NCBI GenBank assembly: GCA_013416795.1
Contig: RQSC01001147.1
Span: 36,481-83,208, forward strand
Reading direction: 5' to 3'
DNA from: Prasinococcaceae sp. CCMP 1430
Taxonomy: Eukaryota > Plantae > Prasinodermophyta
DNA: 46,728 nucleotides
In this document: piece by piece, positions 10,616 through 15,475 of the stretch
Layout: the number at the start of each line of letters is the position of its first letter
How positions within the stretch are numbered: position 1 is the first letter of the stretch
Notes under the pieces: generated by a model
What the model was told of the DNA's origin: nothing
Database searches by the model: none
Seen by the model: the letters and a program-made list of their open reading frames with translations, nothing else
Made by a program: the position numbers and the translations under genes

Positions 10616-12613
10616 TCACTTCTTCATAGAGGCGTACATGGCGTCCACCTCCGCCTGGTACTTCTTCAGCAGCTGGGGCCTCTTCTTCTTGAAGGTGGGC
10701 GTCAGCAGCTCGCTCTCCGGGGTCCACGCCTCGGGCTCGAGGTGCACCGCCTTTACCATCTCGAAGCCCTTGAGCCTGCCCTCCTTGCCCGTGGTCGTCA
10801 GCAGAGAGAGGATGTGCGCCTTGGCCTTGTCGCTGGCGCAGATGGCCGCAAAGTCGCCCGACACGCCGTTGTCCCCGGCCCACTTCTTGAGCTTGTCCTC
10901 GTTGGGGCACACCACCGCAACCAGCGTGCTCTCAAACGAGTTGCCGTACACCCACACCGCGTCGAAGTCGCCGCACTTGCCGAAGATGTTCTCGAGCTTC
11001 TCCACGGCGACGTACTCGCCCTGCGAGAGCTTGAAGATGTTCTTCTTGCGGTCGACGATCTTGATGGCGCCTTCGGGAGTGATGATGCCGATGTCACCCG
11101 TGTGGAACCAGCCGCTCTCCTCGAGCACCTCCGCGGTGAGCTCGGGCTGCTTGTAGTAGCCCTTGAAGACCGCGGGGCCCTTGAAGCAGATCTCGCCCGC
11201 GGGCGGGTCGTTGGTGGGCAGGTAGTTCATCTCCGGGACGGCATCCAGGCACACCTGCACAGCAGGCGTCACGACGCCCACGGTGCCCGCCATCTTTCCG
11301 TTGGGGTAGTCCAGCGGCACGATGCAGCTCGCAGCGCACGTCTCGGTGAGGCCGTAGCCCTGCGACACGCCGGCGCACATGCCCACGCGCAGGAAGTCCT
11401 CCACGTGACGCGCGAGCGGCGCGGCGCCCGAGCACACGGCCTTCACGCGGCCGCCCAGCTTCTGCGCCACCTTCTTGAACACGATCTTGTCGGCGAGCGG
11501 CGAGGCCTGGGACTGCGGGAGACCCACCTTCTCCATGAAGTACAGCTTGCGCTCGGTCGCCCACTTGAGGAGCCATTTGAGGATCCCCTTGGAGTTGAAC
11601 TTGGCCATCACGCCGGCGTAGATCTTGTCATAGATGCGCGGCACGCCGGCGAAGAGCGTGGGCTTGCACGCGCCGATGTCGTCGACGAGCAGCTTGACGT
11701 CGCCGCGCCAGTAGCCGATGTGTGCGCCCATGCCGATGTACATGATCTCGACCACCTGGTCGAAGATGTGCGCCAGCGGCAGGAAGGAGAAGAACGTGTC
11801 GTCCTCGCCGAATTTGACGAACTCCTGCAGGAAGGCCTGCGCACCGCCGACCTCGTACATGTATGTGTCGTGCAGAAGCATGACGCCCTTGGGGTTGCCG
11901 GTGGTGCCGCTCGTGTACATGATGACCGCCAGGTCCTCCTTCTTGGGCGGCACGGGCTCCGCCGGGTTGGCATCGCCGAGGGCGAGGAACTCCGCGTAGG
12001 TGTACACAGCCGCGCCCTTCAGGTTCGTGCCTTTGATGGCTTCTTCCACCGTGGCCTTCGCCGCGGCGTTGTCCTCCTTGCCGAACAGCACCACCGCCTT
12101 CACCTTGGTCTTCACCTGCGGCAGAGAGCCGACGAAGGCGGCCAGCTGCTTCTTGCCCGTGTTCACGCAGGCGACCTCGCACTCGGCGTGGTCGATGATG
12201 TACTCGATCACGTCCGCGCCGAGAGTGTCGTACAGCGGGATCGTCACGCACGACTGGCTGGCGTTGGCGAGGAGGAGCTCCATCCACTGGATGCAGTTGG
12301 GGGACAGGATGCCCACCTTGGAGCCCGACGACACGCCGACCTTGGCGAGCGCGGACTGCAGCTTGGTGACGGCGGCGCCCGTCTGCGCGTACGTCTGGTA
12401 CTCGTACGGGCCCTCGCCATTGGGCCCGGTGCGCTCGCCGATGAATTTGTTGTTGGCGAACTTGGCGAGCGAGCCCTGCCAGAGCTCGTAGATCGAGTCG
12501 TACGGGTAGCGGAAGTCCTCGGCCGAGCCCATGCCGCAGCCCAGGGTGGGGCCCTTGGTGCCCGACGCGGGCGCCACCTCCACCATCTTGGTGCGCTCGA
12601 AGCACTTCTTCAT
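10616..12613 (-). CDS. LACS: Long-chain acyl-CoA synthetase (665 aa), intronless
   Basis: AMP-binding motif IMYTSGTTGNPKGV, plus FLPLAHIF, QGYGLTET, GWFHTGDIG and DRKKNIFKLSQGEYVAVE. Confidence 0.95.
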   Translation of the reverse strand: MKKCFERTKMVEVAPASGTKGPTLGCGMGSAEDFRYPYDSIYELWQGSLAKFANNKFIGERTGPNGEGPYEYQTYAQTGAAVTKLQSALAKVGVSSGSKVGILSPNCIQWMELLLANASQSCVTIPLYDTLGADVIEYIIDHAECEVACVNTGKKQLAAFVGSLPQVKTKVKAVVLFGKEDNAAAKATVEEAIKGTNLKGAAVYTYAEFLALGDANPAEPVPPKKEDLAVIMYTSGTTGNPKGVMLLHDTYMYEVGGAQAFLQEFVKFGEDDTFFSFLPLAHIFDQVVEIMYIGMGAHIGYWRGDVKLLVDDIGACKPTLFAGVPRIYDKIYAGVMAKFNSKGILKWLLKWATERKLYFMEKVGLPQSQASPLADKIVFKKVAQKLGGRVKAVCSGAAPLARHVEDFLRVGMCAGVSQGYGLTETCAASCIVPLDYPNGKMAGTVGVVTPAVQVCLDAVPEMNYLPTNDPPAGEICFKGPAVFKGYYKQPELTAEVLEESGWFHTGDIGIITPEGAIKIVDRKKNIFKLSQGEYVAVEKLENIFGKCGDFDAVWVYGNSFESTLVAVVCPNEDKLKKWAGDNGVSGDFAAICASDKAKAHILSLLTTTGKEGRLKGFEMVKAVHLEPEAWTPESELLTPTFKKKRPQLLKKYQAEVDAMYASMKK

Positions 12614-12993
12614 GGCGTCCGGCGGGGGTGTGGTCCCCTTTTCCCTCTCCGATCGGCGGGCTCGGACGGCCGCGAGGCGAAGGGGAGGGGACGGGGAGCG
12701 CGCGCGTCCCGCGCGTGCTGTGGGACGCGCGCTGCTGCAGCGCGCGCGCGCGCGGAGAACCATCCGAATCCGCGCTCCGCGTTTTTGTGTCGCGGCGCGC
12801 GCGCGCATGCGTCAAGACATGTCTTTCGCCGCCCGTTTCGCGGCAATCCCGCGCCAGAAACCTTCCGTGCGAGGATTTTCTGCGCGTCGCATCGGCGCGC
12901 GGGCGGCAACGCGGCGTCGATTGATAACAACAACAGCGCGCACGCGCCCCCCGCGCGCCCGCAGCGGCGCGCGCTGGCGACGGCGACGGCGGC

Positions 12994-13109
12994 NNNNNNN
13001 NNNNNNNNNNNNNNNNNNNNNNNNNNNNNNNNNNNNNNNNNNNNNNNNNNNNNNNNNNNNNNNNNNNNNNNNNNNNNNNNNNNNNNNNNNNNNNNNNNNN
13101 NNNNNNNNN
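12994..13109. other. Scaffold gap (116 N)
   Basis: Run of N between the divergent LACS and eRF1-like genes. Confidence 1.
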
Positions 13110-13112
13110 GCG

Positions 13113-14328
13113 ATGGCGCCCGCCGCGCCCGCGCCCGCCCGGGCGGAGACGCTGGTGTTCGTCGTGGCGAGCGGCCTCGGCGGCGCGGAGCTCACCGCGG
13201 TCATCGAGGAGCTCAAGAACTCGTCGAAGGGCATCGGGTGAGCGACGGCGCGCTGCGCTGTCTCGCTTCGCGCCGCGCCGCACGCAGCGAGCGAGCGAGC
13301 GCCGGCCCGCGCCGCGCCGCGCACGCCCGCGCGGGCGCCGTGAGCGCGTCCTCCATCCTAACCAGCCTCGCGGCCCTCATCTCCTCCCATGGCGTCTGTC
13401 CAGCACACACAAGCGCCGGCAGCTCTACTGGGACGCCTACAGCAAGCTCGCCGGGAAAGCCACCGCGGCAGCCAGCGACGGCAAGGGGGCGTGCGCCTTG
13501 CGCTACTCGGCGACCGCAGCGGATGTAGAGGCGGGAGGGGGCACCGCCGAGGTCGTCGAGCTCACCAAGCGGCAGCGCGGCCTCCTGAGTGGCGGCTCGG
13601 TCGAGATCCTCGGGCGCAAACTGCGCCCCCCCGAGGACGATGGCAGCGGCAAGGGTGGCTGGGCGATCGCGTGGTCCGAGGAGGACGCGGCCGCCGCGTA
13701 CGCAGACCTCTTCGAGGGCGAGCCCTGCGTGTACCTCACGTCCGACGCCGTGTACGTCGGCACGCGCTTCAAGCGCGCGCTCTGCAAGAAGCTTTCAGCG
13801 CCGCTCAAGGCCGCCAAAGATGTCGTCGCCGCGGTGGCTGCGCTGCAGCCGGACGCGCCGCTGCGATCCGTGTCGTTCGCGGGCAACCACCCGCCATCGG
13901 TGAACGCCTACAACACCTTTCTCGCGGGCATCACCAAGCTCGATGGTGAGCTGCCAGAACACATCGGGCGCTGCTCGTCGGCGTCGCCCACGGACGTGTA
14001 CGTCTACTTTCTGGAACGTCGCAACGGCCACCTCGTTGCCGAAGCGGGCAAGCTCATCGCGCGCATGAAGACAGACGTCGACAAGTCCCTCGTTCCGCTC
14101 ATCTGCGCAGCGTCGACGCGAGAGGCTGCCGTCGCGTACAAGATGGCACTGATGAAGACCGTGTACGTGCATGAGTCCATGGGTAAGTTCATCGATCGCT
14201 GTCGCGCGGACGGCACGGTCGAGCTGCACGTCGTGCGAGGGGACGTCGAGGATAGTGAGTTCGGACGCTTCGGGAAGATAAACTTCGAAATGTACTACCG
14301 GTGTGATCTTGCCACCATGGGCGCGTAA
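13113..14328 (+). CDS. Divergent eRF1-fold protein lacking NIKS and GGQ (349 aa); exons 13113-13237 and 13404-14328
   Basis: GTGAGC donor, CTAAC branch point and CAG acceptor give a continuous ORF. By-eye register with eRF1 domain 1 (ELKNSSKGIGTHKRR vs EFGTASNIKSRVNR), the end of domain 2 (SVSFAGN, EAGKLI) and domain 3 (FGKINFEMYYRCD vs FGGIGGILRYRVD). Confidence 0.6.
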
Positions 14329-14340
14329 TGGCATCGCCGT

Positions 14341-15234
14341 TTACTCCAGCAGCGCGTCAGACACGGGCGCCGGCGCGGGTGGTGCGGGCGGTTTCGGGCG
14401 CTGCGGCATGTTCGCGCGCGCGTGCATGCCGCCGTCCACGCGCACAGACTCGCCGGTCATCCAGCCTGAGGCCTGCTCCGACGCCAGGAAGCACGCCAAG
14501 CTCGCGCAGTCCTCCACCGTTCCCAGCCGTCCGGCAGGCAGGTGCGGCAGCCACATGCCCTGCGTCTCGGGCTTCGCAAACACGGCGGCCGTGCGCTCCA
14601 CCGGCACGACGCCGGGCGCGATGGCATTCACGCGGATGCCCAGTGGCGCCAGCTCACACGCGAGCGTCGCCGTCAGGCTGTCAAGACCGGCCTTGGTCAT
14701 CGCATACAAGGACATGTACTCCACTGAGAGCGTGCCGTGGATGGACGTGTTGTTGATGACGCACATGCCCCGCGCGTCTTCGTCGGAGCGGCCTGTCCTG
14801 TGAGCGGCGAGCTTGCGAGTGAGCAGGTAGGGCGCACGCAAGTTCACCGCAGTGATGTCATCGAAGTGCGCGGCGCCGCAGTCCTCGCTGTGTCCCTTGA
14901 GCACGATGCCCGCATTGTTTATCACGATGTCCACTGCGCCCAGTCGCTCGACAGCCGCGTCGAAGAGCGCCTCCGCCGCCGCCGCCGAGCGCAGGTCGGC
15001 CCCAAGGGCGAACGCCGCCGCCGCATCGCCGCCTGCACCTTCGCGGAGTCCACGCACGACCGCGCAGGCGCCCTCCTCGCGCGTGTGGTACGCCACCGCC
15101 ACGCGTGCGCCCTGCCGCCCCAGCTCGCGCGCGATCGCCGCGCCGATGCCGCCAGAGCCGCCCGTGACCAGCGCGCGCTTCCCCGCCAGGTCCCCATACG
15201 TGGGTAACGTCGACACCACCGTCGCCGCCGCCAT
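14341..15234 (-). CDS. Classical short-chain dehydrogenase/reductase (297 aa)
   Basis: ALVTGGSGGIG, INNAG, catalytic YAMTK, GIRVNAIAPG. Confidence 0.95.
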   Translation of the reverse strand: MAAATVVSTLPTYGDLAGKRALVTGGSGGIGAAIARELGRQGARVAVAYHTREEGACAVVRGLREGAGGDAAAAFALGADLRSAAAAEALFDAAVERLGAVDIVINNAGIVLKGHSEDCGAAHFDDITAVNLRAPYLLTRKLAAHRTGRSDEDARGMCVINNTSIHGTLSVEYMSLYAMTKAGLDSLTATLACELAPLGIRVNAIAPGVVPVERTAAVFAKPETQGMWLPHLPAGRLGTVEDCASLACFLASEQASGWMTGESVRVDGGMHARANMPQRPKPPAPPAPAPVSDALLE

Positions 15235-15475
15235 GCCGCCCTGCCCACCCCCCCACGGCACCCCGCACGCAGTCTGGCCCGCCCCCACGCTCGCGCGCGC
15301 TGTGCGCGCTCCCACTGGTGCCCCCGCCTCGCTGCCGTCCACGTGTTCAGCTCCACCAATGCATTCGTTCATGTACATAAAGCACGGGAGAGTTAAGTTC
15401 AGGTAGGTCAAAACGCACCCGCAGCGCGCGCGCGCGCGCCGGCTGTTGCTGTTGCGGCAGCGGCAGCGGAGCGAA

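Follow-up and report, generated by a model that had tools for sequence, protein, structure and literature searches.

What does a protein do when it has the fold of a translation termination factor and neither the motif for stop codons nor the one for peptidyl hydrolysis? This question is raised by a gene at positions 13113 to 14328 (plus strand, as are all features of the gene given below) of a 46,728-nucleotide stretch of the genome of Prasinococcaceae sp. CCMP 1430 (GenBank assembly GCA_013416795.1, contig RQSC01001147.1, positions 36,481 to 83,208), referred to here as the window, which is GC-rich throughout (68%). The gene has two exons and encodes a product of 349 amino acids (aa), which an original prediction made from the sequence alone had described as an eRF1-fold protein missing both the NIKS and the GGQ motif. 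Our analyses place it in a new, motif-less family of eukaryotic eRF1-type proteins that lacks the defining traits of classical eRF1, of Pelota, and of VLRF-1. The gene is real, expressed as a spliced contig, and strongly constrained.

Fold and domain architecture

AlphaFold2 models of the window protein (EukProt P0090) and of a homologue, P0006, were built from the family alignment (predicted local distance difference test [pLDDT] of 93.6 and predicted TM score of 0.88 for the window protein; pLDDT of 93.1 for P0006). When both models were compared with PDB structures by Foldseek, all matches at E <= 0.001 were aRF1, eRF1, Balon, or Pelota, with best E values of 5e-8 for the window protein and 2e-11 for P0006, so that the structural check proposed with the original prediction came out in its favor. 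The ESM-Atlas neighbors comprised clusters of archaeal aRF1/Pelota proteins along with two unnamed clusters from giant viruses.

The modeled protein shows the architecture of the aeRF-1 superfamily: an N-terminal stop-codon-domain fold, a central RNase H fold, and a C-terminal Pelota/L7Ae-like domain. At the level of the predicted fold it is a member of this superfamily with an N-domain of the eRF1 type and not of the Pelota type, as had been claimed. The N-domain of Pelota/Dom34, in contrast, is an Sm-like barrel; structural alignments with Pelota leave residues 1 to 145 of the window protein uncovered, and no match to the Pfam model Pelota_N was obtained. The RNase H-like middle domain (residues 147 to 248; positions 13717 to 14022), delimited by DSSP and by the ranges of VIA alignments with the middle and C-terminal domains of aRF1/Pelota, is reduced to about 100 residues, compared to about 135 in eRF1. 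The C-terminal domain (residues 249 to 349; positions 14023 to 14325) is of the eRF1_3/Pelota/L7Ae type; unlike that of eRF1/aRF1, it has neither a mini-domain nor a zinc-ribbon insert. It is also the domain with the closest structural agreement (VIA root mean square deviation [rmsd] of 2.5, 20% identity). In the model, the three domains are rigidly arranged in an accommodated-like manner.

Loss of the decoding and hydrolysis motifs

Residues were mapped by hhalign comparison of the family alignment with a reference set of 101 aRF1 and giant-virus eRF1 sequences, gathered by searching DNA for a degenerate pattern of the KHxxGGQSxxRFxR block. A global alignment with this set was meaningless and was discarded; the local alignment is in line with the secondary-structure elements of the model. 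By domain, the E values are 8.9e-4 for the C-domain, 0.41 for the N-domain, and 0.29 for the middle domain (0.29 in a reversed control), and the C-domain is the sole part with profile-level similarity to aRF1/eRF1. Together with the VIA rmsd, this bears out the early impression that domain 3 is the best conserved with respect to eRF1.

Neither NIKS nor GGQ is found at its expected site in any of the 61 aligned family members, so the claimed loss of both motifs extends to the whole alignment. NIKS is absent from all 61, as is the shorter NIK, and GGQ occurs in five members, by chance and inside the N-domain only. Across the same 61 members, the middle domain has no conserved glutamine. TASNIKS aligns provisionally with S37-SKGIG-T43, as first proposed, at the tip that joins helix 24-40 to helix 44-64 (DSSP loop 41-43); the full hairpin-tip motif that replaces it, S37-S-K-G-I-G-T-H-K-R-R47 (positions 13221 to 13419; hhalign, DSSP, and conservation), is interrupted by an intron. 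The proposed replacement of YxCxxxF by YVGTRF has to be corrected. Y159-V-G-T-R-F164 (positions 13753 to 13770; hhalign and DSSP) forms strand 2 and the following turn of the middle domain, and the stretch that hhalign places opposite YxCxxxF is A129-I-A-W-S-E-E135 (positions 13663 to 13683; strand 128-133, helix 135-146), in which the motif is lost. Opposite KHxxGGQS, hhalign places a six-residue deletion, and a short loop, K171-L-S-A-P-L-K-A-A-K-D181 (positions 13789 to 13821; hhalign, DSSP, and conservation), stands in its place. The helix past the GGQ site, long in eRF1, has only 9 residues here (179 to 187), which confirms the earlier description of this region as cut down to a short helix. 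Compared to eRF1/aRF1, the window protein is thus without NIKS, YxCxxxF, and GGQ, with the GGQ loop deleted and the next helix shortened.

Family-specific conservation

The family conserves a set of residues of its own. Invariant across the 61 members are R47, Y54, Q99, G112, D143, K165, Y211, N212, Y241, F244, and E337, and nearly invariant are S38, K39, H44, K45, E148, R166, C169, Y340, and R341. Q99, the family's only invariant glutamine, lies in T96-K-R-Q-R-G101 (positions 13564 to 13581), the core of a conserved basic N-domain insertion of about residues 94 to 127 (T96-KRQRG...G112-x-K114) that faces a gap on the aRF1 side of the hhalign alignment and has no counterpart in aRF1/eRF1. In place of the decoding motifs stand a basic tip, SKxIG[ST]HKRR, and this basic insertion, TKRQ[RK]G. 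K177 is nearly invariant just ahead of the helix after strand 3, and K180, at the N terminus of that helix, is 70 to 90% conserved; basic residues that bind large-subunit ribosomal RNA are reported in this helix throughout the superfamily (Burroughs & Aravind, PMC6514570). Mean column identity within the family is 0.58 for the N-domain, 0.67 for the middle domain, and 0.66 for the C-domain.

Gene structure and expression

Exon 1 (positions 13113 to 13237; ATG at 13113) encodes residues 1 to 41 and two bases of the Gly42 codon, including the first strand of the N-domain and its helix 24-40. It is followed by a GT..AG intron of 166 bases in phase 2 (positions 13238 to 13403) and by exon 2 (positions 13404 to 14328), which runs from the third base of codon 42 through residue 349 to the stop codon at 14326 to 14328. 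Without splicing, the frame from the ATG spans 42 codons and ends at a stop overlapping the GTGAG donor, and a second frame begins 3' of the CAG acceptor and continues to the same stop at 14326 to 14328. A 247-nucleotide contig of the public run X1, 100% identical to the window, skips exactly positions 13238 to 13403 (joint 13237|13404); the record of this run gives no library type, and its RNA nature is argued from the missing intron. Further contigs span exon 2 and show no additional joints, and a seawater metatranscriptome contig also represents the gene. The spliced product is identical, residue for residue, to EukProt P0090, which is Prasinoderma coloniale PRCOL_00004945-RA (349 aa), with 307 of 307 residues identical over exon 2. 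Homologues, including complete MMETSP transcripts, read straight through the junction ('...LKSSSKSxG[ST]HKRRQLYW...'). An extra exon carrying GGQ, which would have refuted the original prediction, is absent: none lies at the spliced junction, and in relatives the complete MMETSP transcripts run collinear with the gene and likewise have no GGQ. The codon that the gene's sole intron interrupts, that of Gly42, sits right at the tip of the decoding hairpin, at the position equivalent to NIKS. Relatives on green-alga-like and stramenopile-like contigs were called as single uninterrupted open reading frames (ORFs).

Upstream, an assembly gap (N run, positions 12994 to 13109) makes the promoter and the 5' untranslated region (UTR) unreadable here. 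With only 3 bases between the gap and the ATG, the 5' end of the gene is based on homologues and not on the DNA of the window. The first strand starts 4 to 12 residues past the start of each homologue and at residue 12 in the window protein (DSSP of the model), and there is therefore no N-terminal extension able to serve as an organelle-targeting peptide.

Searches and distribution of the family

Sequence searches with domain models do not detect this family. No Pfam family matches the window protein or any of 54 relatives at E <= 10, including eRF1_1, eRF1_2, and eRF1_3, so the Pfam comparison that had been suggested as a check came back empty; the protein is also shorter than eRF1 (349 aa versus about 435). 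Searches of NCBIfam and of PDB sequences gave only noise, whether started from the single protein, from every family member, or from the family profile; the profile search of PDB sequences recovered no eRF1, and a search of the ESM-Atlas by features yielded no usable match. A word-indexed search, by comparison, returned 89 clusters of proteins of 335 to 365 aa that are 45 to 59% identical, and a profile search of 1.84 billion representatives returned 197 matches at E <= 0.001. The 150 matches listed of these 197 all belong to the family, in full or as fragments, and none of them links it to eRF1, Pelota, or a bacterial clade. A scan of IMG/VR by pattern and tblastn recovered no family member. 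A family invisible to Pfam and hidden Markov model searches illustrates the reach of structure prediction and merits a dedicated family model.

As for the taxonomic distribution, a check suggested at the outset, the family is present in green algae, red algae, stramenopiles, and choanoflagellates. Named carriers are Prasinoderma, the red algae Porphyridium purpureum and Rhodella violacea, the bolidophyte Triparma columacea, and three acanthoecid choanoflagellates. In addition, marine contigs that are compact and poor in introns (GC 57 to 67%) form four syntenic sets with the look of mamiellophyte green algae, and a further contig looks like that of a stramenopile, as it carries an aureochrome-like bZIP-PAS gene. 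The family occurs in ecologically dominant marine plankton, namely prasinophyte-grade green algae, red algae, bolidophytes, and choanoflagellates. In the family tree, Porphyridium joins the green-alga-like set with 99% SH-aLRT support, away from the red alga Rhodella. This placement hints that the family tree departs from the species tree, through either transfer or an artifact of a quick, unrooted, and mostly unlabeled tree, from which we draw no conclusion on transfer.

How does the family fit the known diversity of the superfamily? For eukaryotes, a 2019 survey of the aeRF-1 superfamily recognized eRF1, Dom34, and eVLRF-1 and, for prokaryotes, baeRF-1 along with further VLRF-1 clades (PMC6514570); it does not list the family described here. 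An earlier survey likewise included only eRF1 and Dom34 (PMC2613156), and the literature covered, which excludes subscription journals, contains no description of the family. Eukaryotes are thought to hold three offshoots of the archaeal release-factor fold, namely eRF1, Pelota/Dom34, and Vms1/ANKZF1. A fourth family, strongly conserved and expressed, would add a termination, rescue, or hibernation factor to this set.

Comparison with known aeRF-1 proteins

Pelota is approached in two respects, since the predicted middle domain is GGQ-less and apparently inert and the predicted C-domain is of the Pelota type without a mini-domain. A parallel in design is Balon/baeRF-1 (e.g., Msmeg1130 and Rv2629), which also has the aeRF1 fold without NIKS and GGQ. 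Balon, however, is bacterial, acts on 70S ribosomes with EF-Tu, and has an HP motif of its own, a bL27 trap, and a C-domain beta-hairpin, whereas the window family is eukaryotic and DSSP of the C-domain of the window protein shows no extra hairpin. No baeRF family of Pfam was matched, and no prokaryotic relative is found among the profile matches listed. The window family shares Balon's design but apparently not its lineage, and a bacterial design in which the eRF1 body lacks NIKS and GGQ seems to be paralleled among eukaryotes.

Vms1/ANKZF1 (eVLRF-1) is likewise a eukaryotic offshoot of the aeRF-1 superfamily, with a specialized role in ribosome quality control (PMC6514570). VLRF-1 proteins keep a catalytic glutamine loop and lack a Pelota-type C-domain, and in most eukaryotes they are combined with zinc-finger, ankyrin, and VIM modules (PMC6514570). 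The window protein shows the opposite combination, with a C-domain and without a conserved middle-domain glutamine of the GxxQ type, and it does not match the VLRF1 model of Pfam.

Compact eRF1-fold proteins are also found in giant viruses. The uncharacterized proteins Harvfovirus A0A3G5A3C1 and Yasminevirus A0A5K0UB33 (BFVD), of 305 to 322 aa, have the same overall fold and are the best viral matches (E of 1.6e-10, TM of 0.57/0.64), ranking above annotated viral eRF1s, with only about 12% identity; the comparison with them is by fold. Both viruses are of the Klosneuvirinae type, and two ESM-Atlas clusters of Nucleocytoviricota without Pfam domains share the compact eRF1 fold. Separately, the GGQ-block pattern caught 21 viral contigs of IMG/VR (L001 to L021), most of them encoding giant-virus eRF1 with intact TASNIKS and GGQ; L005, L014, and L016 carry short GGQ-bearing fragments of about 60 to 270 aa without an N-domain.

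A putative noncatalytic factor of the ribosomal A site

What could such a protein do? Stop-codon reading in the manner of eRF1 is excluded because NIKS and YxCxxxF are gone, and peptidyl-tRNA hydrolysis by the GGQ mechanism is excluded because the loop is deleted and the next helix is shortened. In eRF1 and Pelota, the C-domain binds the delivering GTPase (eRF3, Hbs1, or aEF1alpha) and ABCE1. This domain is the best preserved part of the window protein, which makes a Pelota-like or Balon-like action likely. We give about an even chance to the reading that the protein is a noncatalytic factor of the ribosomal A site, a eukaryotic counterpart of Pelota or Balon by analogy and by model. It would be an eRF1-derived cytosolic protein no longer able to release peptides, whose tRNA-like three-domain body would most likely still dock at the A site of 80S ribosomes. 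Through the basic tip and the insertion it would sense something other than a stop codon, and it would settle in the A site when ribosomes are stalled or idle, with no need for a stop codon, then either recruiting ABCE1 for splitting, as Pelota does, or keeping ribosomes silent, as Balon does. Balon offers a direct precedent, as an aeRF1-fold protein without NIKS and GGQ that acts as an A-site hibernation factor (PMC10901736). Titration of eRF3/ABCE1, modulation of readthrough, and ribosome rescue, the roles imagined in the original prediction, would be one of several readings compatible with the predicted fold.

A bolder version of the A-site reading is rather improbable as a whole. The family would then represent a fourth branch of the aeRF-1 superfamily in eukaryotes, ancient and so far unrecognized, next to eRF1, Pelota, and Vms1: a eukaryotic "Balon" whose invariant basic decoding tip (SKxIG[ST]HKRR) and TKRQ insertion recognize a defined ribosomal state or a non-stop A-site signal, for example, idle ribosomes in nutrient stress. 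More speculatively still, it might compete with eRF1 at particular codons. On this bolder reading, the patchy spread among marine protists and the giant-virus look-alikes could reflect repeated loss or virus-mediated transfer.

Several points weigh against an A-site factor. The whole-length local hhalign comparison is marginal (E of 0.0046, probability of 7.6%), even if it is collinear over 308 columns, and the N- and middle domains alone score no better than the reversed control. The motif equivalences are provisional, being based on a weak profile alignment and on the order of secondary-structure elements. A fold in common is no proof of a function in common, and the C-domain fold recurs in RNA-binding proteins of the L7Ae/L30e type. 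Gene neighborhoods carry no translation-specific signal. Ribosome binding, the putative partners eRF3, Hbs1, and ABCE1, and the physiological role are all projected from the fold.

An alternative is a repurposed RNA-binding or enzymatic protein that no longer acts on the A site, with its L7Ae-like C-domain binding a kink-turn or tRNA-like RNA, for example, or its RNase H-like middle domain put to a new chemistry. We regard this alternative as unlikely. It is quite improbable that the protein is an off-ribosome decoy, whose C-domain would sequester eRF3, Hbs1, or ABCE1 from eRF1/Pelota and so tune termination or readthrough without entering the A site. A decoy would fit a C-domain that is both the closest in structure (rmsd of 2.5, 20% identity) and alone in showing detectable similarity of sequence to eRF1/aRF1, but it would not need the strict conservation of the tip (H44 and R47), the TKRQ insertion, and the middle domain. 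Moreover, the N- and middle domains are about as conserved within the family as the C-domain, and the rigid, accommodated-like arrangement of the three modeled domains points to docking on a large RNA machine.

Could another residue have taken over catalysis? Q99 of TKRQRG is invariant in all 61 members and lies beside small and basic residues, and VLRF-1-type factors show a variable motif around the catalytic glutamine (PMC6514570). An active release or rescue hydrolase with such a non-GGQ catalytic residue is nevertheless highly improbable: Q99 belongs to the N-domain, which in eRF1 faces the decoding center, far from the peptidyl-transferase center, and the middle domain has a shortened tip without a conserved glutamine. 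Finally, a decaying eRF1 pseudogene or an annotation artifact beside the gap, which the ATG 3 bases past the N run and the lack of a Pfam domain might suggest, is refuted by the full-length homologues with 45 to 59% identity in very distant eukaryotes, the intact frame, the pLDDT of 93 to 94, and the spliced contig and complete transcripts.

Gene neighborhoods

In the four syntenic green-alga-like contig sets, the family member lies tail to tail with an OGFOD2-like 2-oxoglutarate oxygenase gene (PF25238, E of 5.6e-26), at L142:7137-8705, L145:7136-8677, L148:9183-10940, and L150:9125-10822. The flanks in these sets encode GOGAT, a metallophosphoesterase, BCD1/zf-HIT, pyruvate kinase, and SQS_PSY. 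The related OGFOD1/Tpa1 proteins act on translation termination. The pairing is found in neither Prasinoderma nor the stramenopile-like contig and probably reflects synteny by descent.

In the window, the divergent upstream neighbor (positions 10616 to 12808, minus strand) is long-chain acyl-CoA-synthetase-like (AMP-binding, E of 2.5e-77), and the assembly gap at 12994 to 13109 lies within the upstream region common to this gene and the eRF1-like gene. Downstream, a short-chain dehydrogenase ORF (positions 14341 to 15240, minus strand; adh_short_C2, E of 8.5e-51) converges on the eRF1-like gene. Only 12 bases separate the stop codon of the latter (14326 to 14328) from the end of this ORF, and the 3' UTRs of the two genes must overlap.
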